Below are positions 446 through 22,167 of a stretch of 25,130 nt of DNA, one piece after another. The notes below the pieces were generated by a model. It did not search any database. It was not told the DNA's origin and worked only from the letters and a program-made list of their open reading frames with translations. Numbering within the stretch: the stretch's first letter is position 1; the number at the start of each line of letters is the position of its first letter. Origin of the DNA: Bugula neritina (lineage: Eukaryota > Animalia > Bryozoa); contig CAXIUT010000114.1 in the NCBI GenBank assembly GCA_964035545.1, forward strand, positions 1 through 25,130. Reading direction: 5' to 3'. Made by a program: the position numbers and the translations under genes.

Positions 446-3400
446 GCGAGTAGATAGATTATATAGATTTATATAACTACTAGATGAATGAATGTAATTA
501 GATGAGTGAATATAATTAGTGGATCAATAAATATAATTAGATCAATGAGTTGTTAGCCCAAAAGAAAAGTTTCTAAAGAAGTTCATAGCAATCAAAACTA
601 TCTTAACTTTATAAAAAAGAATCACCTTTTCATGTACCTTTACCTTTAGTCAGACAATAAAACTTTTCATAGTTAACTAATTCTAAGCTCCAGTCTCCAA
701 GTAAACCCTAATACCATGGGAATGGAAGTGGTAATTTTTCTTATAAGAAAACAAGTTAGAAATAATAACTGTCAAAGCCGCCATCAAATAGAGTAATCCA
801 TGATTCTCTATCTAAATTTCAACTTAATTCCAATCAACTCAACCAGATAAGCTAGATTTATAGCATATAGAAAGGAAACAGTGCTTAGTCAACGACTATT
901 TATGATTCAGTTCTTAAAAAGAATAACGAGATAGCCAATAATTTAAATAAAAAGACAAAACATTCAAAGCATGAAGCAGCAAAAGAGTTACTGTTCCATT
1001 TGAATAAGAACAAATCTACCTAGCATAAAAAAATATAATTTAAATCAATCAACATAGACAGATACAGCTCTATCCCTGACTCTCCTTAACTCAACTTGAA
1101 ATTCCCAATGATTTAGAAAAAGACCTACGCAACTATTACAGGTGAACAATAAGATAGAGCTAATGATATAAATCTGAGATAGAGATTGAAGATCATATAG
1201 AAGAGATAGAAAAAAACCTAACTCTAGTCCGAAAGAAAAAATCAATAAAGAGAAAAGTAGAAATAATAGACAGATAAAAAATAAAGATCCCTATAGAATA
1301 AATTCAAAATTAGATAATAATTATATGGACTATTGCCCTCTTTTAAAACTCAAAACCTGCACTATTAGATCCTAAAAAAAAATAAATACTTCAACCCCAA
1401 TAGATATAAAAACCAATCAGATAAAACATAAAGTCCTCTCAAATAAATGCTCTAGGAGTATCTATAAAAAAACATCCTCGTTAAATGTTCATCTATCCAC
1501 ATCAAAAGTAAATAAAAGTAAATAAATGCCATTATCAATAGAGATATATTTGATGTGACTATGTTCGGAGATAAGTAGGATATATAGTTGAACGATAGTG
1601 CTAGAACCACCTAGCTCTTCATCAAGCCTGGTTCAGAAATAGACTCCTATGCCACAGTCTAAAACTCATAAATCGTCAAATAAGTGTAAATTAAAAATAG
1701 AGTAAAAAAACCACCCATCACTTAACTCAAATATGAAGGAGACCTATCCATCTACGAACTCAAAATCAGATATTTCAGATAATTTCTATTTATGGTTAAT
1801 TTGACCCATCGAGTTTTTGATCCAATTCTACTCAAAGAAGCTAACTCTCTCAAACATTAAAATAAATACAAATTCTACCTAGGAAAAGGAAATAACTATC
1901 TTCTCATAAAGTCTCTTCTAAAAAGAAGATTCTGGTGGACATCAGAAGAAGACCCTAAAAAGTCTAACTTTGTGTGGACTCAACTCAAAGTCAACTACAT
2001 CTATCAACTTCAAAAAAGAAGTTAAAACTATCATACTTACTTCAAACTTGACAAAGCTATATCAAGTCCCTCATCATCTCCTAAAAAAAGAAAAAAGAAA
2101 AATCAAATATAAAACAAACAGCCTAATAAAATAAGTATCTATAAAGCTCCTCTGCCTACAAATGATAAAAAAATATTTACTAATTCAGATAAAAAATATT
2201 ATGACTAGTTCCTTGAAAAAGCAGGTAATCCTTAAAAACTCCTCAAATTCACCAACAGACTAAAATACTTCTAATAAAACTTCTTCATTAAACATAGAAC
2301 CGAAGATATCTCTAACTAAAAAGTTCATAACCATCTATAATTCAACTATTTTATTGGAAACAAAAAAGCTCTCTTCTATAATCTTAAACAATACTACTAG
2401 CTTCAAAAAAAAAATGTTTTTGAAGTCATTCCTTTGACTTTCCATATCAAAAACGGACTCTCAGATCCTCAGTACTAACTCTTCATCAAAGAATTCAAAA
2501 ATACAAAGCAGCAGCCCTCGAAACACAGCAAAAACAATGTTTGGATCGTAAAACCTGGAGAACTATCCAACAGAGGACAAGGAATAACAGTCATTGACGA
2601 GATATATGAACTCAATAACATCATAAAAAAGAAATAAAAACACTTTAACGGACTATAAAAGACATATATCGTTCAGAAATATATAGAAAGGCCTTTACTT
2701 TACAAGGGGAGGAAGTTTGATATAAGACATTTTATGATGGTTAGTAGACTTCATGGTATTATGAGAGCCTATTGGTTCGGTGAAGGCTATATCCGCACTT
2801 CATCCTATGACTACAACATCGATTAAGTGGGAGATTAAATGATCCATCTCACCAACGATGCTATTCAAAAATATTCTTAAGGATATGGCAAATATGAGTA
2901 AGGCAATAAGGTATCTTACAGCTAGTTTCAGAGATATATGGATTCTAGCCATGGATAAGGAAAGTTCAGCTTTAGTGAGATGATTTATCCTCGAATGAAA
3001 GAAATTGGCTTAGACTCAATCAAGTCAACTTACCTCCAGTTAGATCCCAACAACACATAGCATAATTTTTAAATATTTGGACTCGATTTCATGATAGACA
3101 GTAACTACAAAGTATGGCTCATAGAAGTTAATACTAATCCTTGTCTATAACTCAGTAGCAAACTGCTTAACAGAATAATACCTACCATGCTAGAACAGAC
3201 GATGAGACTTACTCTTGATGTCATCTATCCTCCTCCTACACACTACATCAACTCACAAAAATACCTAGCTCCTGATAGTCCACTCTAAAGGTTGCAGTAC
3301 TAGCTTATCTTTGACGAGAGCAGAGATGGAAAAGCTATCTAATAACTCTATACCAATGTAAAACTGCTAGATATGGGCAAAGTTGATTAAGAAGATTAAA

Positions 3401-3450
3401 CCTATTAAAATGATGGAAAATAAATTTAACTTGATAACGATATTAATTGA
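433..3450 (+). CDS. Tubulin-tyrosine-ligase-like (TTLL) family protein, about 1005 aa, no intron needed; start may be 433, 484 or 502
   Basis: One frame open to TGA 3448-3450 with TAR=Glu. Motifs GKGNN..KRRFWW, HNHLEFN..GNKKALF, WIVKPGELSNRG, YIVQKYIERPLLYKGRKFDIR, IHLTNDAIQK, FEIFGLDFMID, LIEVNTNPCLE. Confidence 0.93.
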
Positions 3451-4400
3451 TTTTGTCTTCATTTTCTTTTTAATTAAGAAATCTATTATCACTTACTCTC
3501 AACATAGATTTACTAACATCCCTTTATTTCTTTCTTTTAAGATAACGATATTAATTGATTTTGTCTTCATTTTCTTTTTAATTAAGAAATCTATTATCAC
3601 TTACTCTCAACATAGATTTACTAACATCCCTTTATTTCTTTCTTTTAAGATAACGATATTAATTGATTTTGTCTTCATTTTCTTTTTAATTAAGAAATCT
3701 ATTATCACTTACTCTCAACATAGATTTACTAACATCCCTTTATTTCTTTCTTTTAAGATAACGATATTAATTGATTTTGTCTTCATTTTCTTTTTAATTA
3801 AGAAATCTATTATCACTTACTCTCAACATAGATTTACTAACATCCCTTTATTCCATTCTTTTAAGATAACGATATTAATTGATTTTGTCTTCATTTTCTT
3901 TTTAATTAAGAAATCTATTATCACTTACTCTCAACATAGATTTACTAACATCCCTTTATTCCATTCTTTTAAGATAACGATATTAATTGATTTTGTCTTC
4001 ATTTTCTTTTTAATTAAGAAATCTATTATCACTTACTCTCAACATAGATTTACTAACATCCCTTTATTTCTTTCTTTTAAGATAACGATATTAATTGATT
4101 TTGTCTTCATTTTCTTTTTAATTAAGAAATCTATTATCACTTACTATCAACATAGATTTACTAACATCCCTTTATTTCTTTCTTTTAAGATAACGATATT
4201 AATTGATTTTGTCTTCATTTTCTTTTTAATTAAGAAATCTATTATCACTTACTATCAACATAGATTTACTAACATCCCTTTATTTCTTTCTTTTAAGATA
4301 ACGATATTAATTGATTTTGTCTTCATTTTCTTTTTAATTAAGAAGTCTATTATCACTTACTCTCAACATAGATTTACTAACATCCCTTTATTCCATTCTT
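3433..4400. repeat. 108-bp tandem array, 9 near-identical copies, starting in the last codons of the TTLL gene
   Basis: Unit starts at 3433, 3541, 3649 ... 4297. Variants: TTCCATT in copies 4, 5 and 9; TACTAT in copies 7 and 8. Confidence 0.97.
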
Positions 4401-4527
4401 ATTTTAAGTATTCTTTTGAGATACATCTTCTTTTATACTAAGTATTTTTTACACTAATTATTTCAACTTTTAAGATTTCTTGATGTTTATAATTAAGAAC
4501 AAATAAACTAATAAATAATTTAATACT

Positions 4528-5504
4528 ATGTAAGAATAGTTTCCTAATGATTTCGACAGTTAACAACATAAAATGATCTAGAATAGCTTTTAATCTTCAA
4601 CCAATAATTATATATAAATGATAGTTATCATAAATAAAATTTAAATCATAGAATAATATTATTTCTTAAAGAAATGTTCAAAGCAGTCGAGAATACCCAA
4701 CAATTCCTATCTTTCGGTCATCACCAAACTAAAAGTCAAGCTATCAGCGAGCAACTTCCCTCTTTTCATAAAAAATAAAAGAAAATTAGGTTCAGCTAGC
4801 TTTAAAACAATCCTTCTTTTCTCTAGTAAAAAGTAAATAAAAATAAATGCACAGTTTTAAAACTCATCGGCAATAAATAATAAAACATATAAGCAATGGT
4901 CAACTAGTTTGGATGCAAATGCGGATGGAAGTCGTAATTCAAAAACATCCTCAATCTTCTCATCAATAAAATATATCGACTCAGAAACGAAAGAAATCAA
5001 CTCAAATCACGACTATCATCCTACACACAAAACCAATAAACAAAAAATACAAAAGATATAGGCACCTATACCCATCCTCTCATCTCAAATAATCAATAAA
5101 TGCTAGAAAATTATATCAAAAACAATAATCAAGAGTAAAATATAAACAAATAAACATTTTCTATGAACACTCATAAAATATAGTAATTTTTTGAAGATAC
5201 TCCTGTCCTCAGACTATCTGACAGGTTCAATTAAACCAACCTACTAGAAAGCCTACCTTCACATCGACTACCAACCGACTCCAAGTCATAAAACTAACTA
5301 GAAATCTCTTCAGAATCATCATCAACCATCAATGTCCTCCGATAATACACACAAAATTCATAAAAAAGAGTTTAAAATATAAGTCATCTCCTAAAAAGCA
5401 ATAAAATAAACCTTAACACTCTCTAAAACCATATAGAAAAAGTACATTGCATCAAACAACTTTAAAAATACGACCAAAATAAAAGAAATCGTATTCTCTT
5501 CTGA
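4528..5504 (+). CDS. Hypothetical protein; core ORF 4674-5504, possible 5' exon from 4528 via a 23-nt intron at 4559-4581
   Basis: Frame open under TAR=Glu to TGA 5502-5504. The spliced start reads MEEEFPNDFDKELLIFNQELY...FLKEMFKAV. No family recognised, and the 5' structure is inferred. Confidence 0.6.
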
Positions 5505-5585
5505 TTTATATATATAACCATTTCAGTACTTCTTTTAAATTTGCATTTTATGCTATCATTTGTTGATTTATATCACTTGATCATT

Positions 5586-5708
5586 TAAGGATCTATAAAA
5601 GGTAATTAAGGATCTATAAAATGTAATTAATGATCTATAAAAGGTAATTAATGATCTATAAAAGGTAATTAATGATCTATAAAAGGTAATTTAAGGATCT
5701 TATAAAAA
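5586..5708. repeat. 21-bp tandem array, about 5.5 copies, just upstream of SNRNP27
   Basis: Unit TAA(G/T)GATCTATAAAAGGTAAT; ends about 8 nt before ATG 5716. Confidence 0.9.
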
Positions 5709-5715
5709 TCTTTAA

Positions 5716-6102
5716 ATGAGCTAACAAACAAAAAAACAATAAGAAAGAAGATTAAAATTAGCAAAACTAGCATAAATACACGATAGCTCTGACAACTCCA
5801 ACAGTCGCTCCCGATCCAGAGACAACTAAGCAAAATAAAAGCACTCCTCATCACCAAATAACAAATCAAAATAAAAAGAAGAAAAATTAAATCAAGAATA
5901 AAGCTAATAAGAACCTAACTAATATGTAGACTAGGATCAGATGGCTAAGATGATGGGCTTTTCTAGTTTTTCTTCAACTAAGAATAAAGACCACAACAAA
6001 AGTTCCCAATAAGGAGTTTTCAAAAACAGCAAAATGCGTCGATAGTATCGACAATATATGAATCGAAGGGGAGGATTTGATAGAAAACTTGATAAAATAT
6101 GA
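5716..6102 (+). CDS. SNRNP27: U4/U6.U5 tri-snRNP 27 kDa protein, 128 aa
   Basis: C-terminal MAKMMGFSSFSSTKNK...RREYRQYMNRRGGFDRKLD matches the family signature; short SRSRSR tract. Confidence 0.9.
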
Positions 6103-6111
6103 TAAAGACAA

Positions 6112-7661
6112 TCAGTGAGGTCTGTTATGTTCAAACTCATCATTCCTAATTAAAGATTCCAGCATATTAGCAGACTGTATCCGCTAGTAGAAAGGAGCCG
6201 TCTGAGATTTCGACTTCTTCCGGTTGTACTCTTTAGAGGCCTGATGCCAGCTAAACTACTTGTCCATAGTTATCACTGGCAAGTACTCTTCCTCTCGATC
6301 CACCATTATCCCCTTGCTCTTAAATAAATTGTTGATAAAAAGGTCACACAATTCTTTCTCAAAAACATAGCAAGCCTAGTTATTTCTCATTTGCACATCG
6401 ACTGGACTCCAGTAGCTCATCAGTCTGGTTTTTGTTGTCATTGCTTGGGGTATAGTAGACATGCTGTCTGCAGATTTAAGTACTTTAGTGACTTTGTCTA
6501 CATTAAATATGAGACTATTCATCCAGACAGGACTTTACTGGATCTTTTCTAAGTTGTTAGTTCTTTTTTTGCTATTGTAATTGGCAATAGTAGTTAAATC
6601 CTGGATAGTATCTGCCTTTGAAAATCCATTTTGTTCTACTACTCTCCTAAAGATTTTATCTTTTTGATTTTAGGCGTAGGTACACTTATACATTAAATCG
6701 AAGTCTTCTTTATTTACATCAAAAAGTCCTATCATGTAAGGATCTACTACCATTTCCAACATGTTTTAACAGTCTGCACAACAGACGTATTATATTTTAT
6801 CAATTTTGAGTTTTTATAAGATTCCAACTCCTTTAATTGAGGCCTGATAGAAATCTCCAGAGCCATTAGGCATGGTCAATAAATCTGCAGAATCTTTGTT
6901 TTTCAAGCAGACACTTCCGTTGAGATTAAGTACTGGATAATTGTTCTGCATGCAGCATTGAATTTTATCTCCATATTTATATTTTTTTAGAAACTGATTA
7001 ACTTTATCAGCATTACTATTGTTATAGTAGACATAGGTATTAGGAAACTCATATTTGTTTCCTATTTCTTAAAGCCTTTTCATCATTATTTCAAACAGAC
7101 ACAAGTCATGAGGTTGTTCTTTATAAAACTATTTGTTGAACTCTTCTTCACTTTTAGTTGAAGAACTACCCACAAATAATATCACTCCCACTATATAAAC
7201 TACTCCTTACCTCTTTTCTTTACTAAAATATCTTACCCCAACTGACTCAACTTCCTTAACTGCTCAACATCGTTTATATTGTACTTCTGATGTAGGTTGA
7301 TTTTTTAAAATTGTTGTTATTAATCATTCCTGTTTATTTTTTTTTTAATTAGGTTTTGAAACAACTGTATTAATCACGAACTACGAGATCCAGGTTTTAA
7401 AAAGTTATGTTTTTCCATTTTTACAGATAATTAAATTTAGTCCGTTTGTCTGTACATCTTCTTAAGTGGTCCAATAACTGTTTGTGCTAGTATAAACTTA
7501 TTTTAGCTATTACTAATCGCATCCAAGGAAAACAGTCTTACTTCTACCCACATATTTCGTTTTCTAAACAACTAATACATACACTTTATAAAAACTGAGG
7601 CCTCCTCTAACAACTAAGACTCAGATTTCTTGCCCACACTACTCACAGGCTACTGTCCCAT
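6112..7661 (-). CDS. Divergent UDP-N-acetylglucosamine pyrophosphorylase (UAP1)/UDPGP-family protein, about 496 aa, 3 introns
   Basis: After splicing 7564-7582, 7365-7384 and 7191-7210: LGEDILVKKRVGVILFVG, CLFEIMMKRL, QNNYPVLNLNG..MPNGSGDFY, ENMLEMVVDPYMIG, VFEKELCDLF, VDREEEYLP, in the same order as UAP1. Confidence 0.75.
7191..7210 (-). other. 20-nt intron GTAAGGAGTAGTTTATATAG (UAP-like)
   Basis: Joins LGEDILVKKR to VGVILFVG, as expected for the first strand of UAP1. Confidence 0.85.
7365..7384 (-). other. 20-nt intron GTAGTTCGTGATTAATACAG (UAP-like)
   Basis: Restores the frame (ENLDL|LFQNL) and removes a TGA. Confidence 0.75.
7564..7582 (-). other. 19-nt intron GTATGTATTAGTTGTTTAG (UAP-like)
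   Basis: GT..AG; joins ATG 7661 to the next open frame. Confidence 0.6.
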
Positions 7662-7847
7662 CAATATTATAATCAATCATTTCAAATTATATTACCAATA
7701 TTTACCATTAACTATTCACCTAGCTATTTTCATTTACACTATTATCTATCTATTATTTACCATTAACTATCTATCTAGTATCTTTTAAAAGCCAAATCAG
7801 TAGAACAGATATGATAGGGATAGGTAATTAGATATTATTATATTTAA

Positions 7848-9872
7848 ATGTAAGAAGAAGAACAGGAATAGAAATAAACCATCAGTAAAATAGAATCTAT
7901 CGTCAACTTTAAAGAACTCTACTATCAAGAAAGAGATAGAAGAATTTAACTAGAAAAACAACTATAAGCCTAAAAAATAAAAGTAAAAAAATTAATGTCC
8001 ACCAACTCTAAATCAAAAGCTAGATATTGTGCCTATTGTTCTACTCACCTTTCCTCAAAAAAATAAATGTCAAAAGATGAAGGAGTAGTCCTCTCATAAC
8101 TAAAAGGCTTCTCATAAAAAATGGAAAGCATGAAGTTTCCTTCCCTTAAGAAATAACTCACTTAACCCAGCATCATCTCTAAGATTTAATAAGGACCCAA
8201 CAAAAAGAAACATGTAGGAATGATATAAAACTTTACAGTCTTCGGAATCAAAGAATCTGTGATTGATGAATATGTTCTTGAAAGTGGAGTAATCAACGAA
8301 TTTGAAGGATAAATTCTCTACTCCAAAAACTAGTAAAACTAAAGCGAACTATTAGCTCCAAAACTAGTATTTCCATCAGGCATGGTCATCAAAAAATGCA
8401 GTAGTTTGAAAGCCAAAGAGAAAACTATTGAGCTAATGTCCTACTGCTATACTAACCTCAAATGCTTCCTCCTTAACTTTGAATGTCAAGACCCTCACTT
8501 TGTATAGCATCACTACAACAATGATCTTCTTAATTACATCAATCCAGAGCATAGGCTTTTCTGTATTTGCATCGGTATACACGATTACACCAATATTTAA
8601 AACAAAAAAGATAAAATAAACGTCTCTTTGGGCAATATCTAAAACTCGAATGGATCTTTTCCCAGTTTATAGTCAGATAAAATCAAAAGCGAAGGTCACT
8701 AAAACCCAAACTCGCACAACAAAGATTCAGCTAAATCTATAGACCTAGTTCTTTAAAACCTCAATGACGTGCAAATAGGAATCACCCAAAGAGTCTATTG
8801 TATCATGACTTATTATCCTTTTTTCAGTTTTTTTGAATAAATTCTTAGAAGTCTCATCAATATCGTCAAGATGGAAAGACTAGCTATCTACAAGCATAAT
8901 AACTAAAACATCAAACTCACCATCAAACAAACTGACTCCAAGTTTCAAAATGAAAGAATGGTGACGCTACTAAATGACTGTCTCAGAGATCTAGAATTCA
9001 AAAAGGTCAATTTCAACAAATAGTATGAACTCAGACTTATTAACCAACAAAAAATAACCATGCTGACCTACTGGGATGAAGCCAAAACCTTCTTCACAAG
9101 AGAGTGGATTTATTCAATAGTCAGCATGTTCAATTTTGAAACATTCATAGAACTCTTTACTCTTATTATGCTCGAAGACAGAGTAGTTTTCATCTGCTAA
9201 AACTCTCATATCCTTACTCATGCCATCTTCCTCTTCTCTCATATTCTCCTTCAACCTCTCAACTATCCCTTCCCAGTAGTAAACATCATCCCTCGTCAGA
9301 AAAAAGAAGAAAACAACGATTACCTTAATGCTCCTTTTCCAGTAGTGTATGGTCTTCTAAAGAAGAAGAAATCTCAGGAAGACAAAAATATAATAGAAGA
9401 CTATGATATGACCTATGTGTTTCTTAGTCCCGAGAAAGTAGATATCTATTACCGCTAAGATAGAAAGAAAATACTAAACAATAGATCAACCAAACTTATG
9501 AACCACAAAGAACTGAAAGATATTTTTAAAGATTTAAAGAAAACAAGAAAGAAATAACCTAAATCTATTAAATACGAACTCTAGTCGACTGACTACTGCA
9601 TCGTGGCAAACATCGAATAGAAGGAGAAAGGTCTCAGAATAGTGTCGATAGTTAATCAATTTGTCAGCTAGGAGATAGTTAAAAAACTGCCTTCAACAAT
9701 TGAGATATAAAACATAAAGAAAAAGATAGATAGCAAAGATTTACTCGAACAGAAAGATTAAACAACATATATTATGAACTTAATTATGAATGACTTCAAA
9801 AAAACTAATAAAGATCCCTTCGTACTCGCACTCCTCAACACACAAATCATCAACAACCATCTCTTCATATGA
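7848..9872 (+). CDS. DENN-domain protein (putative Rab GEF), 674 aa
   Basis: Start and stop in the same frame. uDENN-like LVFPSG and VYCIMTYYPFFSFFE; DENN core LIMLEDRVVFICENSHILT..LLQPLNYPFPVVNIIP..DYLNAPFPVVYGL. Confidence 0.85.
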
Positions 9873-9934
9873 TCGTGTATCTTTAAAATCTAATTCTGTC
9901 TTTTATTAACACTCATTCTGTAGAACCAATTCCT

Positions 9935-10130
9935 TATTTAATTAACTATCTAATCAAGACAAATCTGTATTTAATTAACTATCTAATCAAGACAAATCTG
10001 TATTTAATTAACTATCTAATCAAGACAAATCTGTATTTAATTAACTATCTAATCAAGACAAATCTGTATTTAATTAACTATCTAATCAAGACAAATCTGT
10101 ATTTAATTAACTATCTAATCAAGACAAATC
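9935..10130. repeat. 33-bp tandem array, 6 copies, containing the stop codon of the minus-strand gene 10119-10931
   Basis: Unit TATTTAATTAACTATCTAATCAAGACAAATCTG; CAAGAC ends at 9960, 9993 ... 10125. Confidence 0.97.
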
Positions 10131-10931
10131 CCAAAATCTGAAAGGAAGCTTTCGACTATTGACATTTTCATTCACAACTACTCCTTCCTAACTAAAAGTA
10201 ACTCCATGATCTTTCTTTTCCTTATTTTCAATTCTAATCTTGCTCTCTTCTCCTTCTCTCTTTTTCTTCTGAGGAACATAGCCCTTGTCTAACATATCCA
10301 CATCAAACTACAAAGGTTTAGGCTTTAGCCTCTCGCTATCTATCTAAAAATATTATTCATCTTTCCTATCTGCCATGAACTATCCACATAAAGGTCTTCC
10401 ACATTTTTGCTGAAAATTCTATTTCAGGGTTCTATATTGTGCAGAATGTCCTCGAAGTTCCTTTCCCTTACCTATACTATTTTTATTTGATTCTTTTGGT
10501 TTGTTTATGCGTTTATCATTTTGATGGGTTGGTTTTACAACTTTTTTCTTTTCTTCTGCTTTTCTGATCTGTTCTTCTTTTCTATGTTTTTCTTCCATTT
10601 TCTTCTTTTTGTGCATTGACTCGATTATTTACTAGTCATTTTATTCAAATCTATTACTATCATCTCTACCATCGTTATCTGGATCTGAATAGGTGTAATA
10701 GGCTTGATTGATCATTTTTTGAGGCTCTTCATTGATAAAGTTACTTTCAGCTAGTTCTTGCTGAGGCAAAGGTTCAATATTTCCAGATTTAGTTCCCTTG
10801 ATGGGCTAGTTGTCGTTCAAAGAGTGAATGAGTTGTTTGTTAGGAAGAGGATTAGTATGAGCTGAATTAGATTTTGCTATTGAGAATTGATTGTTAGTAG
10901 TAGATATCACAACTCCCCTTTTTTTACTCAT
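10119..10931 (-). CDS. Hypothetical charged, probably disordered protein, 270 aa, ending SRKLPFRFWDLS
   Basis: Single frame from ATG 10931 to TGA 10121-10119 under TAR=Glu; includes supplied ORF 10419-10616. Confidence 0.75.
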
Positions 10932-11103
10932 TTTTCTTATATATTAACTATCAATAATCAATATAATCTAATAGTTCATTTGACAATAAATACCTCACTA
11001 GCTATCAATCATATTACTATTCTCATTTAAAACATAAGATCTTGAGAAACATTTCAATGAAGAGTATTTGAATGATAAATTAAATCTTTGATTATAATAG
11101 TTG

Positions 11104-13580
11104 ATGGGAAAGAAAGGAAAATACAGACAGCAATAAGAAGAAGAACAGCCTAAAAAGAAAACTATGATCACTGAATAACAACTCATGGATAAAACTCACA
11201 TGGATAAAACATAGTTTATTCCACTACTACCCTCAGAATCATTATATCCTCCTTTCATCTATAACTCATACTCAGAAACTGCCCTCGAAAAAATAGTATC
11301 CGATCTCAACTACCTCCTCTACACCACTTTCAAATAGTTCTGGGCTACTCTACTCTACAACCCGACTCTCAAACACTGCCTATCATCCTGTCTCACCTAC
11401 CTTCATAGACGATGGCTCAACAACTACGTTTTTTCAAAGCAATCCTTTGACGAGTTTTAAAAAGAGGAAATTTGCCAATAAAACTATGGACAGGTGAAAT
11501 AACAGATGTCATACTAGACAACATAAGGATTAACCAAAGTTATTCTCTTAATCTACCATAGAATAGTCAGTTTTAATTCTTAAAATAGCTAACTATCAAT
11601 GCTCTACAAAATACCATAGTAAATAACAACTAAGTACCTCATAGATGTCCCTAGACTTCTATAAATATGCTAAATATTTGGATAAAGTAATGGTCATATA
11701 GTTAAATATATAATTAAAATGTACGCAAATACAAGAAAAGACTTTTTCAATGAAATAACCAATACAGTATTGCCTCTACTTTTTAGAAAAGTCTAATAAC
11801 TGATTAGAACAACCAAAGGTCAAACAGATAGATAATAATATGGCATTAATTTTAGTTATCAAAGGCTGGCAGGGATGAAACTGAGTCAAGGATAATAATA
11901 GCTACAAAAGAAGACAAATATTCTAATGCAATATCTTAGTTTTATCTCTATGATTGGTTCTTTGATAAAATTCTTTCCTTAAGACTGCAAAGACCATTGC
12001 TACTACAACTCACAAGTTCATGTTTTGTTTTAAAACATATTTTTGTAGTTATAAGTAGCATACAAGAGTTGGAACTATCAATCCCAATAGATAAAGTTTT
12101 TAGGAATGATTAATACAGTAACCAAAAGATGTATTGACTATTTTGTTTAATATTTCAAAAGATGCAACTAGATTTTAGTTGAAAAACATAAGACTCATTA
12201 TCTATAAGCCTATGTACTTAGCTTATAAAGGATATTTAAAGATTTCGGGAGAAGATTAAACATAGGCAAAAAGAATCAAAATAGAAATTTACTTATGTAC
12301 AAAAATAATACAAAAATAATTTGATATTCACAGTATGCTACATAACATTTATAAAATTGATATTGACTATTAGTGCTATCAATTCAACCTCTAGTATCTC
12401 AAAGATATCATCATTTCATTCGATAATTAATTCAAATAATAGTATCTGGCTGAGGAATAACCCAGGCAGTAATAAATAGAATAATAAACTCAACCAGATC
12501 TTCAAAAACAAGAATAAATATCCCCTTAAAATAAAATCAATTCATAAAAATAATTAAAAAAGAAGTAATAAAAGGAGTCAAAGAAGAAGGAATAAAAGGA
12601 GTCAAAGAAGAAGTAAAAGAAGGAGTAAGAGAAGGAGTAAGAGAAGGAGTAAAAGAAGGAGTAAGAGAAGGAGTAAGAGAAGGAGTAAGAGAAGGAGTAA
12701 AAGAAGGAGTAAGAGAAGGAGTAAGAGAAGGAGTAAAAGAAGGAGTAAGAGAAGGAGTAAGAGAAGGAGTAGTAAGATGTGAATATAAATAAAAAAGAGA
12801 AAGAGGTAATGAAAGATGATATGGCGTCATTATAGTTATTAGTACCAAAAAGAATGAGAAGTGAAGATTACTACTAAAAATTATATGCGAATTTTAACAA
12901 AAATTATTATAAAGGATAGTATGATGATGATTATGATTAAATAGCTGATCATGATAAACGTCCTCTCTTCTATGAGTAAGATTCTTCCAGCTAATAAGAA
13001 GAGGAAAAATAAAAAAGACTTGTTAGTAACTCAAAATATCTAGAACATATCAACAGCATTCATCATCATAAATATTAAGTCAACAGGCAAGAAGTCAGAT
13101 AAAAATATATCAATCAGCCCAAATATGGAAGAACCCATCATGAAGATACTAAAAATAATCCAAATACCAGCTACAATTGTAACAAAAACAACAATACTAA
13201 CAAAAACAACAATACTAACAATAATAATAGTAATAGTAATAACAACAATAACAGTAACAACAACAATAACAGTAACAACAGTAGTAATAGCACAAAGAAC
13301 ACAAAATATGCTATAAAAAAATGATAAAAATGTTGATCAAAACAAGAAAAAATACGTATAAAAAAGGTCATAGATCAAAGAAGAATTTTAGTAGGAAGAC
13401 AAAAGGTGTGAGTACAGATAAAAAGAGGAGTTGGGATAAAAGGAGTAAGAGCAAAGAGGAGGTCAAGGCTACAAGAAAAGCAATAAAAGTTATGCCTATA
13501 AGCCTAAAGATAAGCATGAAAATAATGATAAGGGCAGAAACAAAAACAAAACAAAATAGTATAAAGAAAAAAGATATTGA
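11104..13580 (+). CDS. ASCC2: Activating signal cointegrator 1 complex subunit 2-like, about 806-824 aa, with two +1 frame breaks (near 12300-12324 and 13272-13324)
   Basis: DLNYLLYTTFKEFWATLLYNPTLKHCLSSCLTYLHRRW, VILLIYHRI, IDVPRLLEICEIFGESN and EYDDDYDE parallel ASCC2 blocks. How the breaks resolve is uncertain. Confidence 0.78.
12556..12772 (+). repeat. Coding 12-bp repeat TAA(G/A)AGAAGGAG encoding (EEKE)n inside ASCC2
   Basis: Visible tandem repeat, read as a Glu/Lys tract in the ASCC2 frame. Confidence 0.9.
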
Positions 13581-13671
13581 TTTAACTCTTGAATTTCATT
13601 AGTATTAATAAAGAGTATTATTTGTTAAATTTATTTAAATTAATAAAATATTCAGAAGAATGTACTAACAA

Positions 13672-14687
13672 TCATTGTTTATTCAACCTATCTAATTCTC
13701 TATTCAATATTTATTCTGTATTTTACGACAGAACTTCAACTTCTTTCCTTAAATTGTTATAAAATCTCATCTTTATAAAAGATTAAGTCTCTTTTGCCTT
13801 TCTCTTTTCATTGCCAGTTTAAATATGTTTTTTATCCTCAACTCCTATCTATTTTTAGTTTTTTACACTACTACAATGATTGCTTTATTTTATCTGTGGA
13901 ATAAAAGGAACCTACTCATATCTACTATTTATTTAATGGTAAAATTTATTCAAAAACTGCTTATTTCCTATATTTTTACCTGACTTTGAGTCAAAAATAT
14001 TTCCTATAAATTTTTATAAATATTGATTCAAGTTATCTTCTACATCTATATCTTTTTAGATAACTATTGATCTCTTTTAGTTAATAACTCTTTCAATAGT
14101 TAGTAGTATATTTTTGAGGTCCATTTTCAAATTATTTTATTTTCTCTTTATTTGATATATATTTTTTACTTTATCAATAATCATTTTCAAAGGAACCACT
14201 ATTTCTTCAGATTAAGGCATTTAGATAATAATATTTTGAGACTAACTAAATAGTTTAAACTTCTCTTGACTTCTAAAGTATGGAAGTTTAATCTTCTTGG
14301 ATAAAAATTTTATATCCTCTTTTGACTATGAAATCCCATGAAGATACCTTTCAATAGATAAAGATAATGATTTCTATACTAGTTAAGAGTTACATCTTCA
14401 AATTTAAGAAATCTAAATGATCGAACCAAAGATGCCCTACTCACTTATTTCTATTTACAATCATCCCCTTTCTCTCGACTTCTCAAATTCTTTAAAACTT
14501 CCTCTCTCTTACTACATTTATTTTGTTTTATTCTGGACATTTTGCTTGTCTTCATCATAAAGGATTTATTCATTTTAGATAGAAAAGAAGAATTAAACAT
14601 CTACCCGTCATATTGAGACAAATCTGTTTGCATAGCCATCTCTTTTTGTCCTTTTTTGCTTGGAAACAAAGAATTTACCTTTATCAT
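13672..14687 (-). CDS. Hypothetical protein, about 331 aa, one 20-nt intron at 14374-14393
   Basis: ATG 14687; intron GTAACTCTTAACTAGTATAG joins FLKFED to KSLSLSIERYL; TGA at 13674-13672. Confidence 0.65.
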
Positions 14688-14748
14688 CTTTGTAGAAGAA
14701 TAGAATATATCAATTAGATTTCATTATTTAATTTCATTATTTATAGCC

Positions 14749-16468
14749 ATGAGTAGATACGCTTAAAAAAAGGTCTCCTACAAAGCCAAAGAACAAATCT
14801 CCTCCAAGTATGGTTTCGAATACGACTAAAGCACTATCAACTACCGCACCTAAATACCTGACTTTCCATAAAAAACAAAAAATAGACCTGATGATAAAAA
14901 CAAACTCAAAAAGATACAGTAGATTGATGATAAAATTCAAAAGCTAAAATAATCAAGACAGTAAAAGAAGTCTGAGATAAAGAAGTTAAACTCATCGTTC
15001 GATGAAGAAATAAATGAATACAAGGATCAAGTATCTTTGGGAAGAAGATGTATTGAAGTGCTAGAATTTGATATTGAGAAAATAGGCTATGAGATAGGTA
15101 GAAAGAGTGGAATAATAAAAAGATTTCAGAGTAGAGCATAAGATTTTGTTTCTAATATCAGATAGTTAAAAAATAAAACTAGAGGGAACAAAAAAATGAA
15201 TAAGACTTATGATGAGATGACCAATAGAGAACTAGATAACTAGAAATCAAGAATATAAAGTATAATGTCAACAAAAATATTAAATAAAAAAGAATAAACT
15301 TAACTAAACAACAAATTACTTAAGATAGATAGAATAAAAGTAGAACCAAATAGAAATATATTTAATAATGATAATCCTGAAGAACAAAAAAAGATAATAG
15401 AATTATAAGACTAAATTAAATCTATTAGAGATAAGTAACATAAAGTCAAAAATGAAAGAAATAATCTTTTCCAAGAAAAAGATTAACTAGAATTAAAAAT
15501 ATAAGATATCAGGTAAGATATTCAAGATATCATTGATAAACTTAAAGAAGTAGCATAGGTAGCTGATTCTAACTAAGATGTAAAAAAGTTATCATAATAG
15601 TCAAAAAAAATTAAATAATCTATTTATAAACTTAGATAAGATATAGCTAAAATAAACTCAGATTATTAATAAAAAGTAAAATAGTATTAAACAGAACAAT
15701 AAAAGATAAAATGGATAGCTTGGGCTACTAAAATTCAATAGAAAAGAAGATAAGAGTGGGATTAGTAAAAAGCATAAAGAAAAAAACAAAAATTAAGATA
15801 AAAAAATGCATAAAAATAAGGTAAAACTAAAGATAATAACAAAACTAAAGATGGTAAAAACAAATGATGATAAAAAATAATAGTAAAAACCTCAATATTA
15901 AAGAAAAATAATCAATAAAAATCAAAAATAAATAGATACTTGTACTTTCTTGATTGATTATTGTAAAAGACTTTATCCAACCTCACCTTCTAACTTTAAA
16001 GGAATTAAATAAAGACAATAAGTTAATATCGATAATGAACTTAAAAAAGGTCAATGGGCTAAATAAAAAGGAGTTTCGATTGTTTAATGCAAAAAGAAAA
16101 AAGGAGATGAATAAGAAACATCAAAAGTCAAATATAATAGAAAAAAACATCAAAAATAAAAAGACTAAGATTAATAAATAGTACCAACTAATCGATTCTC
16201 TCATAATTACTTTACTGCTCAATCTTTCGACTCAGTTAAAGTACTTCCTCCAGCAAAAGTATAGTAACTTGAGGCAATAATTAAAGATCTCTAAGATAAA
16301 GTTGAATACTACTTGAGTCACCCTCAAGAAAGTGTTGAACAGAAATTTGCTAAAGACAAGCACTTTGTCGAAAAAGCAGTTCAAAACTAAGAAACAAAAC
16401 CAAAATATAACAAGTATAAACCTCAAAACAAGAGTGTAATTAACAACGATGACTTCCCAAGTCTATGA
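14749..16468 (+). CDS. Bfr1/proton-pump-interactor-like coiled-coil protein, about 572 aa, with a +1 frame break near 15856-15867
   Basis: Long coiled coil, then in the +1 frame EIDTCTFLIDYCKRL, FSHNYFTAQSFDSVKVLPPAKVEELEAIIKDLEDKVEYY and terminal DDFPSL. Family call from recalled motif layout. Confidence 0.7.
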
Positions 16469-16556
16469 TTGAACCCTTAGTAAATTCATCTAAAATACTA
16501 TAAATAAATATTAATGTTAATAGATAAAATTAATCATAATAACAAATATATTAAAA

Positions 16557-18218
16557 TCACAACTATTTCTTTTTATTTTTTACCATATTAACACAAACTA
16601 ATTCCTGAAGTAGATGATTTTTTTTAATATTTTAATCCTCTTTCAGATTTACTCCTAATTTTTTCCATAAAAGCTTTATATCTTTTCTTGATAAATCAGC
16701 CTTCAAATACTTTTTATATAGTCTCTTCAAATCGTCTTCACTTATTCCCTCACTAAACTATCGAAAAAGCTTATCTACTGAAACCCTTAATTCTCTACAT
16801 TTATTCATAAGTTATATCTTGAATTCATTTATTTTTATCTCATTTTTAGCTGTCATTAATATTAGCTAAAAAAACAACTTTTTTGTACTTAAATCAGTAT
16901 CACTTAAAGATTCAACAAATCTATTTTTTTATATCAAGTTAAACTAATTTTAACAAACGTCAAATATTTAACAAAATTCATTAAAAGATAATCTTGCATT
17001 TTCCTTAGAATATCTTCTAAAAAGTAAATAAACCTAATTCATACTTAGATGATATCCAAATTCTTCGAAATAATCTTTAAAGTTAGAGGCCAAAATAGTA
17101 CCATTTTTATCTTTAGGCAAAGTATCATAAAATAAAACAGGATAAAAGTCAGGACATAGACATAATTATATCCTCAACTCTTAAGTTTTCCATTCAATCA
17201 TTAGAATCTCCTTAAGTTTCAATAAAATCAAACATATATTTCTTCTATATAACAGCTATTATTGACTTACTTTTGATACTAACTTTATTTTGTGATTAGA
17301 ATCTATCCTATGTATATGCTTCTATATTGATTTTTTCTTTCTAATAGCTCCATCATAGTTGTATATAGGACGATGCAAACAGTCATAAAATTAAGGTCTC
17401 ATCATCATCCTCGATTTTTTAGATGATAAAGGCTTTATATCTTTGTACGATTGACAAGATAGTAGAGATTTAGGACTTGTTGGACAAGTTATCATCGTAC
17501 TTATTTTGTTGAATTTACAAGCACTATCCTAATTCATAGTTTTAATTTTTTCCGAAAGACAACCCGTCCATAATGATTTCAACCTCTAAGCAGTTATATT
17601 ACCTGTAATCTTCAAATATCTAGTAAAAAATTAACTTTTATTTATCTCTTCATCTTAATCATCCCAAAACTATCTATTATTAAACTCACCTAAAAGTTCA
17701 CAATCTAAATCTCCATTTTAATCAGTCATTTCGGCTATCCATTTAATTAATTCTTCTGAATCAAGTTAAATTTTAGAACAATAGTGATGAATAGACATAT
17801 CTAGTTCCAATATTTTGACAATAATGTTAAGCAAATAGTTTGGAATAGCACCAATTGCTTACCTTTAGACTGCCATCTTAGCTAAAAGACGATCTTCTTT
17901 ACTCAAAAGTAAAGTAGAAAATTCAACGAAAGATAAACTACATAATATACAAACATACTTCAAACTACTATTATGACTATTCCATCTTACAGATTGTTCC
18001 AACGACTCCACCATATCTTCTTGAACTTTCAAAAAATCACAAAGTTGTTTAAAGCCGATCACTTTTTTATCTTTTGCAACGGATAAATAAGCATCTTTTA
18101 AGTTGAAAGTAATTTCATGGTTTATTTCTTGTCTAAGAATCTCCATTTAGTTCTCAGCTTAACTAATAAAACTGATAGTATCGATGATTTTTCGTTAAGC
18201 TTCAGTCATATTGATCAT
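16557..18218 (-). CDS. Ciliate-type EF-hand-like repeat protein, about 550 aa; possible in-frame 21-nt intron at 17938-17958
   Basis: One open frame. Repeated modules EILRQEI..FNLKDAY and EELRIELCLCPDFYP..KDKNGTI; YLLFRRYSKENARLSFNEF. Confidence 0.75.
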
Positions 18219-18240
18219 ATTCTACGATTTAAATAATTAA

Positions 18241-19412
18241 TCACTAATCATAATCGATCAAAAGTTTTATTCTAAAACACTTGAACATGCCCTTAATAGA
18301 CTTTCCCAAAGAAATCAACCCTTGTTCTTCCATTTCCTTCAAAAGAATAGTCAAATTGCCCTGAACTACTCCGAATTGACTCAAAACATCAAACATGTCC
18401 TTTTCTAAACATTCTCCCTTATTCTTTTTAAGATATTCTATTATTTTAGAATACAAAGATGGCAACTAGTTAGCTTTGTGTCTTATATTTATCTTTTAAT
18501 CCCATAGCTTTTGCACTTAGTTGATAGTTATTTGTCCCTTATTATCACTTTCAAGATGAATACTTACTGCCTTATGTAAAATTTAAAGAATAGTTCTCAT
18601 ATCGCTGCTATGATGAGCCAGTTTCTTACAAACAAACATCAAAGAATGATGAGAAAAATATTTGCATCCTTCCAATCTCTCATCTAAAATCTATTTAATT
18701 TGTTCATAAGAGTAAGGTTTAAAAACTAAACGATTATCACCCATTCTAGAATTAATTTTTCCAGATAATTTTTCAGGAAAATCCATTGTATTAGCAATGA
18801 TTATGAGACCCAATTTCGAAGTAGCCTGGAAAACCCATTCAAACAAATTATAAAATATTTTTTGATCCTTAGTTAGTAAGAAATCAACTTAATCTATCAC
18901 TATTATCAAAGGATTTTTTAATCGACTTAAAGCATTTGAAATAAGACTTTAATATCCTCCCTTTTTTATTAAATTATCTTCTTTAGATAGTATATTCCAA
19001 ATAGATCTAAAGACGTCTTCAGGTCTTTTGAGTGTCATTGCATTGATAAAACCAAAATTTACCCTTTTTACATAGTGATTGCTCAATCTTTTGAGGATCT
19101 CCATGGTTGAAGCAGTTTTTCCGATTCCTGGTATACCTGAAATATCTGTCTTAACAATTGGGTACATAATGTTTTTGCATTAATACGATTCATCATACAA
19201 TCCTGAATGAACTGACTGATCACCTATTTTTATTCATTTCTACCCACTATTTCATCAGGAATGTAATTGCTAGTCAATCGATTGATATTCCATTTGACTT
19301 TAGGAAGTTAATTCTTAATTATTGATCCTATAGTGGTCTCATTGTTTTTTGATGGCATTGATTTACTCTTTATAGTCTTTTTTTAACATAAAGTCCTACG
19401 ATTTTTCATCAT
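18241..19412 (-). CDS. ORC1: Orc1/Cdc6-family AAA+ ATPase, about 383 aa, one 20-nt intron
   Basis: YIPDEIVGR, Walker A LYISGIPGIGKT, FINAMTL, Walker B IIVIDEVD, YNLFEW, IANTMDFPEK..SRMG, FKPYS. ANTMD favours Orc1, but Cdc6 is not excluded. Confidence 0.88.
19146..19165 (-). other. 20-nt intron GTACCCAATTGTTAAGACAG (Orc1/Cdc6)
   Basis: Removal rebuilds TLYISGIPGIGKT exactly. Confidence 0.93.
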
Positions 19413-19477
19413 TTTATATGAGAATTGATTACATCGCTCCTATCACAAAAATAAGTACGTATAATTATTTTGTTGAT

Positions 19478-20713
19478 ATGTTTTTCGGGCAAGGAGGAAC
19501 TCAAAATCAACCATAAAACTAAGAAAAATAACCAGTTAACACCACTGAATTCTACTAACTACTCGATCTACCTAAAGATGCAACCACTGAACAAATCAAA
19601 AAAGCTTACAGAAAGAAAGCTCTTAAAGAACATCCAGACAGAGGAGGAAATCCATAAAAATTCAGAAGAATCAAATAAGCTAGTGAAGTTCTGACAGATC
19701 CCTAAAAAAGACAACTATATGATGAGTATGGATAAGAAGGTGTAAAAAATGGAGGTCCTCATGCAGGAAATATGTTTGATTTTTTCAATCCAAAACAAGA
19801 CAATAAACCTAAAAAGATGAAACCTAAACTCGTCAAAGTAGAAGTTACACTATAAGAAGTCTATTCGGGTACTATGAAACAAATTACTGTTTCTCGATTT
19901 AGACCTTGTACATAGTGTGAAGGAAAAGGAGGAAAAGAAGGAAGCGTAACTCAGTGTGATACATGCAAAGGCAATGGTATTACAGTCAAAATGGTTCAAA
20001 TAGGACCAGGAATGTTTACTCAAGCTCAAGCAAAATGCGATAAATGTGAAGGTCGAGGTTAAACTATCAAGGAGTAAGATAGATGTAAGGTATGTTTAGG
20101 TAAAAAGGTAAAATAAGAGGAGAAAACACTTGAAGTACCTATAGAGCGAGGAGTGCCTGACTCGCATGACTACGTTCTTTATGGATAGAGTGATGAAATA
20201 CCTGGAATTATAGCTGGTGATGTATATGCTAGAATTAGTATTCTTAAACATGATGTTTACTAAAGAAGAGGAGCAGATCTAGTTATGATCAAAGAAATAT
20301 CACTTTTATAAGCATTGACTGGATTTATGATCAAAATCAAACACATTGATGACAAATAATATATTGTTGCTACTGCTCCTGGCTAAGTACTTTAGAATAA
20401 AGAACTCAAAACAATCAAAAAATTAGGAATGCCTTTCTATAAAGACTCTTTATCATTTGGTAATCTCTATCTCTAGTTTATTGTAACTTTTCCTTCTGAC
20501 AACTCTTTGAACAAAGATCAAGTGGCAGCTTTAAGAAATGTTTTCAAGTATACTGAAACGAACGAAGGATTAGACAAGAATCCTATATCATCAGCTTTAG
20601 ATGATTACTCTGAGGATCTTTTGAACCCAAGATCATCGAAATGTTCTGGATAAGGAGAAGATTAAGAGGATGAAGGTGAAGGAGGTCAAGGAATTCCATG
20701 TCAAGCTCAATGA
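19478..20713 (+). CDS. Type I DnaJ/Hsp40 (DNAJA/Ydj1-like), 411 aa
   Basis: J domain with HPD (KKAYRKKALKEHPDRGG), four CxxCxG zinc-finger repeats, ERRGADL..LLEALTG, GMPFY, C-terminal CaaX-like CQAQ before TGA. Confidence 0.96.
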
Positions 20714-20761
20714 TAGGTTACATCTATGAACTATTTATTAATGATAAAAAATAATTATAAA

Positions 20762-22167
20762 TCAAAAATGTTATTTTTGTATGTTTTTGGCTCCATTAAG
20801 AATGAGTTGATCAACTATTTAAACAACTTTTTTAGAATGATAATCATGATTTCTTTTTTTACTAGGAATAGGACTAGAGTTGAATATTTTATTTCTAAAA
20901 TATGAAGGAATATTATTATATCCTATTACAGCACCTACTAATCCAAGAACTATACTGCAGTTCGTATCACTATTAAACCCTTTAGCTAGAGTTCTAACAC
21001 CAGATTGAATAAAGTTTTTTTTCATATCACTGTAATTGCCATCTATCTCAAGTATTTAGTTGATAGCCATTGTAAAAGGTTGTTTCAAATTATTTGCATT
21101 TCCAGTAGTTATAATAGTTTACTCACCATCTTCAATACATTTCCAGAGATCAATCATCTGTTATGAACCAAAATTATAAACAAATTGAGCTGCTTGATGG
21201 TAGGCTAACTTATGATCACCCGTCAACATTATACAACGCAGCAAATTGGCATATATTAGAGCACTCTATCTGACAAAAGCATTAGGAGCTATCAGTCGCA
21301 TCTACTCTGAATATCTAGAGATTTACCACTAATCAAACGGTTAAACTCATATTCATCTAGCTCTAATGACCAAATAACAAGAGGAATTATTCTCACTAGA
21401 CCTAAGTTACTTTCTTGTTTCATATTTCTCAAAGAACCTGCCAGAAGTTGATCTCCTAAAGTTGACATATCGATTTTTCCGCTTTGTTTTCTTTTCTTTC
21501 TGATTTAACTAAAAGATATTCCTATTAAGACAGGAAGATCGAAAGGCTTACTATCCAACCACTCCAAGTACTTTCGAGCTACAATATTTTGATTATAGCT
21601 TCCTTGACCTTCAATTAATGCCTCGCTTAAAGCCAAATTAATCTACCATTCATCAGTACACTATCCACTTTTAAGATTCATGACGCCTCCACCTCTCATC
21701 AATAAAGCCTAGTTTATTGAGTGAGGATTATAGGGTTTGTTGACAACATAAGCTCCCAGAGAATCACCGATCACAAACCCGAACATAGCACCATAAGCCC
21801 GATTGTAAGTATCATTTTTAGCCAAATTCAAACAACGATGATAAGTCAATAGCTGTGCCTGTACCTGACCTTCAAGAATGTCTAGATACTGACTCTTACC
21901 TTTTTTCATGCTGGAACATTTTGGCTTATCTTCCGATTTATCTTAGTTCACCAGAATATAGCTATGACTTCGACTACTAACAGTTTGCTTCTCTCTTGCT
22001 TTCTGCTCCTCAGTTTTTTGCAAGCTTTGAATGAACATACTAACAGACTCATCAGCCATACTTACCGACTCAAATGAGTGTTCAAAATCATAAACCTAGC
22101 TGCCACTAAAGGAGTATTCTTCTGAAGATTCTGTTCTAATTCTTAACTGAAGTATTTTGGATGCCAT
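20762..22167 (-). CDS. ADP-ribosylglycohydrolase (ARH/DraG) family protein, about 461 aa, one 20-nt intron at 21307-21326
   Basis: RAYGAMFGFVIGDSLG, GGGVMNLKSGECTDEWE, YLEWLDSKPFD, NLGLVRIIP, NSDTNCSIVLGLVGAVIGYNNIP; intron GTAAATCTCTAGATATTCAG restores the frame. Confidence 0.87.

Follow-up and report, generated by a model that had tools for sequence, protein, structure and literature searches.

The closest described system is the +1 frameshifting of Euplotes at AAA-TAA and AAA-TAG, which goes together with position-dependent termination. The +1 sites of Euplotes originate by insertion of a single base a short distance upstream of a stop (PMC12275403). Thus the DNA pattern alone cannot separate recoding from error. 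The second pattern to be compared is that of homopolymer consensus errors in long-read assemblies, especially in low-depth cobiont contigs, where short homopolymers change by one base and the changes are clustered. As to the type of gene, the yeast Bfr1 or "nuclear segregation protein" family consists of long charged coiled-coil proteins with a short conserved C-terminal region.

The locus described here has in common with Euplotes sites the AAA-stop followed by a +1 open reading frame, and a single-base insertion just upstream. It differs in that the stop is TGA, in a ciliate with the peritrich code, that the relatives lack the break and that no such signal is seen across the genome; in addition, other breaks in the Bugula neritina assembly lie off stops and are of both signs. 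With homopolymer errors it shares the one-base change in a short run, the clustering, the absence of the break from the short-read assemblies of relatives, and the continuation of conserved coding sequence through the site. The difference is that HiFi data usually get runs of 4-5 bases right. The AAA-TGA break, which might be taken for a new kind of programmed frameshift, is most likely an artefact instead.

The Bugula neritina assembly tzBugNeri2.1 (Darwin Tree of Life) was made with hifiasm from PacBio HiFi reads at 132x, has a QV of 53.7, and has 7.3% of its length in unplaced scaffolds (PMC11480708). The window, i.e., the whole stretch of 25,130 bases analysed, is contig C123 in a 216-Mb assembly of 321 contigs and represents a complete linear chromosome with C4A2/G4T2 telomeres on both ends. 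TAA and TAG codons of the window align opposite Glu in homologous protein fragments, and the code is thus that of peritrichs, with TGA as the sole stop; the alignment speaks for Glu and not for Gln. The window is a 25-kb macronuclear chromosome of a peritrich-type ciliate, a cobiont co-assembled with Bugula neritina.

A separate feature of this chromosome is a tandem array at 3433-4400, in which a 108-nt unit occurs about nine times; the copies are 98-99% identical and free of gaps. The repeats sit within a 352-codon open frame on the plus strand that is without any TAA or TAG, and the codon tracker favoured the minus strand.

The frame break and its surroundings

The 5′ frame (1 mod 3) of the coiled-coil gene ends GGT AAA AAC AAA TGA, with the TGA at 15865-15867, whereas the frame at 2 mod 3 stays open between 15221 and its TGA, which occupies 16466-16468. 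As at Euplotes sites, the 0-frame ends at a stop that follows a shift-prone codon (mostly AAA in Euplotes), here AAA-TGA (15862-15867), and a homologous open reading frame is conserved over 200 codons in the +1 frame. The +1 break reported in the first-pass annotation, with continuation from GAT at 15866, is therefore present, and its estimate of about 200 further conserved codons agrees with the 200 that were counted. Coordinates of this and of the other frame breaks in the window are in Table 1.

Table 1. Features at the frame breaks of the window (all positions are those of the window).
Feature	Position	Strand	Basis and remarks
5′ part of the coiled-coil ("Bfr1-like") gene, ATG to in-frame TGA	14749..15867	+	frame 1 mod 3; colinear with the L025 and L034 orthologs, 56-58% identity
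A5 run, probable site of the surplus base (A4 expected)	15856..15860	+	ortholog frame matches and local 15-nt repeat
AAA TGA T, where the 5′ frame stops; GAT, the first +1 codon, overlaps this stop	15862..15868	+	direct reading
3′ part of the coiled-coil gene, +1 frame, 200 codons and TGA	15866..16468	+	frame 2 mod 3; 59-65% identical to orthologs; shared end ...DFPSL*
A5 run, second unshared +1 break (J1), neighbouring gene	12301..12305	+	pinned by homology, ..LLMYK followed by IIQKEFDIHS, versus LLLYKIVQKEFDVHS; next 0-frame stop ATT-TGA 12322-12324, six codons on
A7 run (13315-13321) then TGA, third unshared +1 break (J2), neighbouring gene	13315..13324	+	located within 13180-13322, most likely at the A7 run
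Neighbouring conserved gene, unknown family	11104..13577	+	spread over three frames in the window; a single frame in each of the two relatives

Important for the length of the A run is a local 15-nt repeat, GGTAAAACTAAAGAT, which is in register only with four As at 15856-15860. If the run has four As, the unit becomes GGT AAA ACA AAT GAT (GKTND) and is in register with the upstream GGT AAA ACT AAA GAT (GKTKD), the two being identical at 13 of 15 positions. The break thus lies in an A5 run for which both the orthologs and the local repeat predict one base fewer. One extra A in GGTAAAAAC, which the first-pass annotation had put forward as the alternative to its frameshift candidate, is favoured here, since four As restore the register of the repeat and the orthologs are unbroken.

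The shift would also be removed by a tiny intron that escaped recognition, or by a germline insert left in place, if its length were 1 mod 3. The ciliate does possess introns of 20-21 nt, and two conserved ones are found on the minus strand of the window. That at 17938-17958 is 21 nt here and 20 nt in the GC-rich relative; that at 19146-19165 measures 20 nt in the window as well as in one of the relatives, and in the other relative its place is taken by an in-frame 21 nt. In both introns an A lies six bases from the 3′ end. However, GT..AG candidates across 15818-15890 have lengths of 12, 30, 30 and 63 nt, none of which is 1 mod 3, and there is therefore no candidate of 16-30 nt with the length needed; candidates farther upstream are followed by sequence whose old frame still agrees with the orthologs, and the length of the protein fits the orthologs without any removal. 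An intron or germline insert is thus an extremely improbable explanation, and the earlier statement that no fitting intron exists and that the two 30-nt candidates leave the frame unshifted is confirmed by the lengths. An apparent break in L024 at 7839-7851 proved to be a 20-nt intron that is 21 nt in the window.

No RNA structure was detected downstream of AAA-TGA (z = -0.01), and AAATGAT is not enriched in the window, with 20 occurrences observed versus 15.3 ± 4.3 expected. No paralogs or second alleles of the coiled-coil gene were found in its own genome. A Pfam search with pieces of the ortholog displayed sub-threshold coiled-coil matches only, with no model above threshold, and an Atlas search gave no usable match for the gene. 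Kinship to the yeast Bfr1 family, as in the label "Bfr1-like" of the first-pass annotation, is therefore tentative.

Orthologs and the other breaks of the window

A 58-residue stop-free piece of the coiled-coil gene was used as query for orthologs, and homologous fragments led to the contigs that carry them. Two full orthologs from related ciliates were detected in short-read metagenome contigs, one in L025/L032/L036 (GC 53%) and one in L034 (GC 40%). The related metagenome contigs belong to JGI 3300073656 and 3300073936 and to ENA ERZ27295712. In both relatives the gene is one unbroken frame across the site, and gene order is kept over about 22 kb between the window and the relatives. The metagenome scans revealed no further orthologs of the gene, and the synteny of L041 is limited to the V-ATPase gene. 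Other assemblies were searched for sequence of the same species, by exact match with a bacterial-code open reading frame and by homology with a wrong-frame open reading frame beside the site, and both searches were blank.

The two pieces of the window gene were aligned to the orthologs with an X placed at the break. Both parts are colinear with the orthologs, with identities of 56-58% in the 5′ part and 59-65% in the 3′ (+1 frame) part. The match is in frame 1 through REKNAEKEGK (about 15818) and in frame 2 from DDKK (15866), and the length of the protein agrees with that of the orthologs with nothing removed. As the 3′ part is conserved as well as the 5′ part, there is no sign of decay. The coiled-coil gene is thus conserved and, evidently, functional; its break belongs to this assembly or to this species alone.

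Synteny extends to window positions 8721-22020, where order and spacing are almost perfectly kept versus L036/L032 and L034, across three ciliates with GC contents of 28%, 40% and 53%. The relatives carry this gene set on contigs of 77-82 kb versus the telomere-capped 25-kb chromosome here.

The comparison with the relatives covered about 17 kb of coding sequence of the window. Exactly three frame changes in it are neither introns nor present in the relatives, all of them +1 and all within 12.3-15.9 kb, a span of 3.6 kb; every one falls together with an A run of at least 5. The relatives show no frame breaks in the same genes, over about 30 kb of orthologous coding sequence. The two broken genes contain 30% of the homopolymer runs of at least 5 among the compared genes. 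A fourth apparent break, at 6107-6112 of the window, was rejected, as it consists of a true gene end and the antisense shadow of the next gene.

At two of the three breaks the old frame ends in AAA-TGA-T, the second being at 13319-13325. Under a null of insertion in runs of at least 4, with one A dropped at each of the three runs, this context is expected in 10-18% of cases (p about 0.03-0.09). The K/N/D-rich composition (xxA AAT GAT) is such that the AAA-TGA-T context arises readily. The uniform +1 sign and the AAA-TGA-T context are small-sample hints of a real phenomenon.

The neighbouring gene also has low-complexity expansions at 12460-12800 and 13180-13300 that are specific to the window and absent in the two orthologs. 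One is an E/K repeat of roughly 100 residues, and the other is a run rich in Asn.

One-base gaps elsewhere in the assembly

The sole ciliate copy of V-ATPase subunit d in the assembly is on contig C31 (L021:1700-2900, minus strand), and this was compared with L038, an 87%-identical contig from a close relative. There are zero gaps over about 900 nt upstream, followed by four 1-nt gaps in 215 nt. Three are in exons, at 2053 (-1), 2027 (+1) and 1959 (+1), spanning 95 nt; the deletion gives rise to CAT-TGA, and the two insertions are a G without a nearby stop (2027) and an A. The fourth is in an intron, which is 19 nt in C31 versus 20 nt in the relative. The conserved V-ATPase d protein continues straight past every shift.

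A stop-triggered +1 mechanism cannot account for the C31 breaks, because one is -1 and one is +1 without a nearby stop, in a single-copy gene that is essential. C31 thus provides independent breaks in the same assembly that are not attributable to recoding, and frame breaks in this assembly need no Euplotes-like mechanism. The C31 gaps are clearly a local cluster of consensus errors.

One A in the run at 15856-15860 is probably surplus. It would be absent from the DNA of the organism and would have entered the co-assembled ciliate contig as an error of the consensus. The coiled-coil gene would then be an intact, conserved, single-exon ciliate gene with a true run of four As. The surplus A would shift the final 200 codons by +1, and the old frame would meet AAA-TGA two codons later. 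Local stretches of the ciliate contigs seem to be covered by reads that are too few or too poor, from which clustered one-base homopolymer errors would follow. A sequencing artefact is favoured because the two relatives are unbroken and similar one-base slips are found elsewhere in the assembly. It should be noted that a miscalled A4 run is rare in a HiFi assembly of normal depth and that the QV of 53.7 applies to the whole assembly; the three window breaks are also all +1, with two old frames ending in AAA-TGA-T, which hints against an artefact.

The extra A may be real and not decoded, either as a recent insertion or as a somatic or minor macronuclear variant that was picked by the assembler, and a truncated product would be made from that copy. 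Homopolymer slippage is also the commonest true indel mutation, and variants occur in polyploid macronuclei and in mixed epibiont populations. Euplotes woodruffi has a macronucleus-only indel (PMC12275403). However, with three events in two adjacent conserved genes and another three in the V-ATPase d gene, of which there is one copy, essential genes would be disabled, and no substitution decay is seen downstream of the break. A real but undecoded insertion is therefore considered unlikely.

Homopolymer irregularities are also present in the telomere tracts, where 21 of 785 runs are of wrong length, in both directions. These are compatible with error and could alternatively be biological.

Telomeric repeats are found at internal positions as well. 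Contigs C10, C11, C14, C18, C24, C29 and C30 are among those (in L002-L021) that have internal G4T2 tracts with further sequence beyond, and they resemble several small chromosomes joined end to end. The internal tracts may stem from chimeric ligation, from joins made by the assembler or from telomere addition at alternative sites.

Gene ends and the programmed frameshift reading

The window and L002-L021 yielded 54 putative gene ends, placed by a codon-usage tracker and not by transcripts. AAA-TGA-T terminates 3 of the 54, and AAA makes up 8.7% of codons. The base after TGA is T in 46 of the 54 and A in 8, with G or C in none, which represents a strong tetranucleotide stop context. With AAA near its background rate and T the usual base after TGA, AAA-TGA-T looks like a normal, even preferred, terminator. 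Avoidance of AAA-TGA, which would be expected for a frameshift signal of the Euplotes type, is thus not seen at these putative gene ends.

Nor were many genes found that need a shift at stops. Three breaks occur in 17 kb, one of them six codons upstream of a stop, and of 110 ciliate kinase domains about 70 have no break. A scan for dynein AAA_6 gave four ciliate copies, too few for break statistics. The codon-usage Viterbi frame tracker was run over 190 kb and recovered 20-nt introns well; its +1 and -1 events beyond introns, several of which are gene boundaries, were not counted as evidence.

Stop-triggered +1 ribosomal frameshifting of the Euplotes kind would require the extra A to be real. 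At AAA-TGA the Lys-tRNA would re-pair on AAU and translation would resume at GAU, giving ...GKNK-DDKK.... In its favor, AAA-stop with +1 continuation is the exact Euplotes motif with TGA in place of TAA or TAG, there is a second AAA-TGA-T break at 13319-13325, all three window breaks are +1, and AAA ahead of the first stop is somewhat commoner than the null predicts. The origin of Euplotes sites by single-base insertion a short distance upstream of a stop (PMC12275403) would also suit the break at 12301-12305. Against it stand the two relatives without a break in this gene or in the orthologous coding sequence compared, the C31 breaks that are -1 or off stops, the kinase domains, and the flat RNA structure score; the frequency of AAA-TGA-T among gene ends, near that of AAA usage, and the T after TGA put the site itself in a preferred terminator context. 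Programmed shifting at this site is accordingly rated quite improbable. The first-pass annotation had offered the site as a candidate of the Euplotes style, and this gains no positive support, as the orthologs are unbroken, other breaks are not tied to stops, AAA-TGA-T ends ordinary genes, and no RNA structure is present.

A broader form of the same idea is that this peritrich-code ciliate tolerates single-base insertions by a +1 shift at the next internal TGA, preferentially at AAA-TGA-T. All three breaks of the chromosome would then be real and would represent a second independent origin of Euplotes-like obligatory frameshifting, which is highly improbable. If true, obligatory stop-triggered frameshifting would be met for the first time beyond the euplotids, with TGA as its stop, and this would bear on how ciliates discriminate internal from terminal stops.

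The preferred reading, a surplus A, has consequences for other genes of the cobiont. Roughly 300 ciliate scaffolds are in the Bugula neritina reference, with local clusters of one-base indels. Thus "broken" ciliate genes found there should not be called pseudogenes, recoding or novel architectures before the reads are checked.

A further observation from the surveyed sequences is a 3.5-kb tandem duplication in L004, at 2444-5948 and 5936-9446, with 96% identity between the copies. Indels in the coding part are in multiples of 3, and one-base differences are found solely past the stop.
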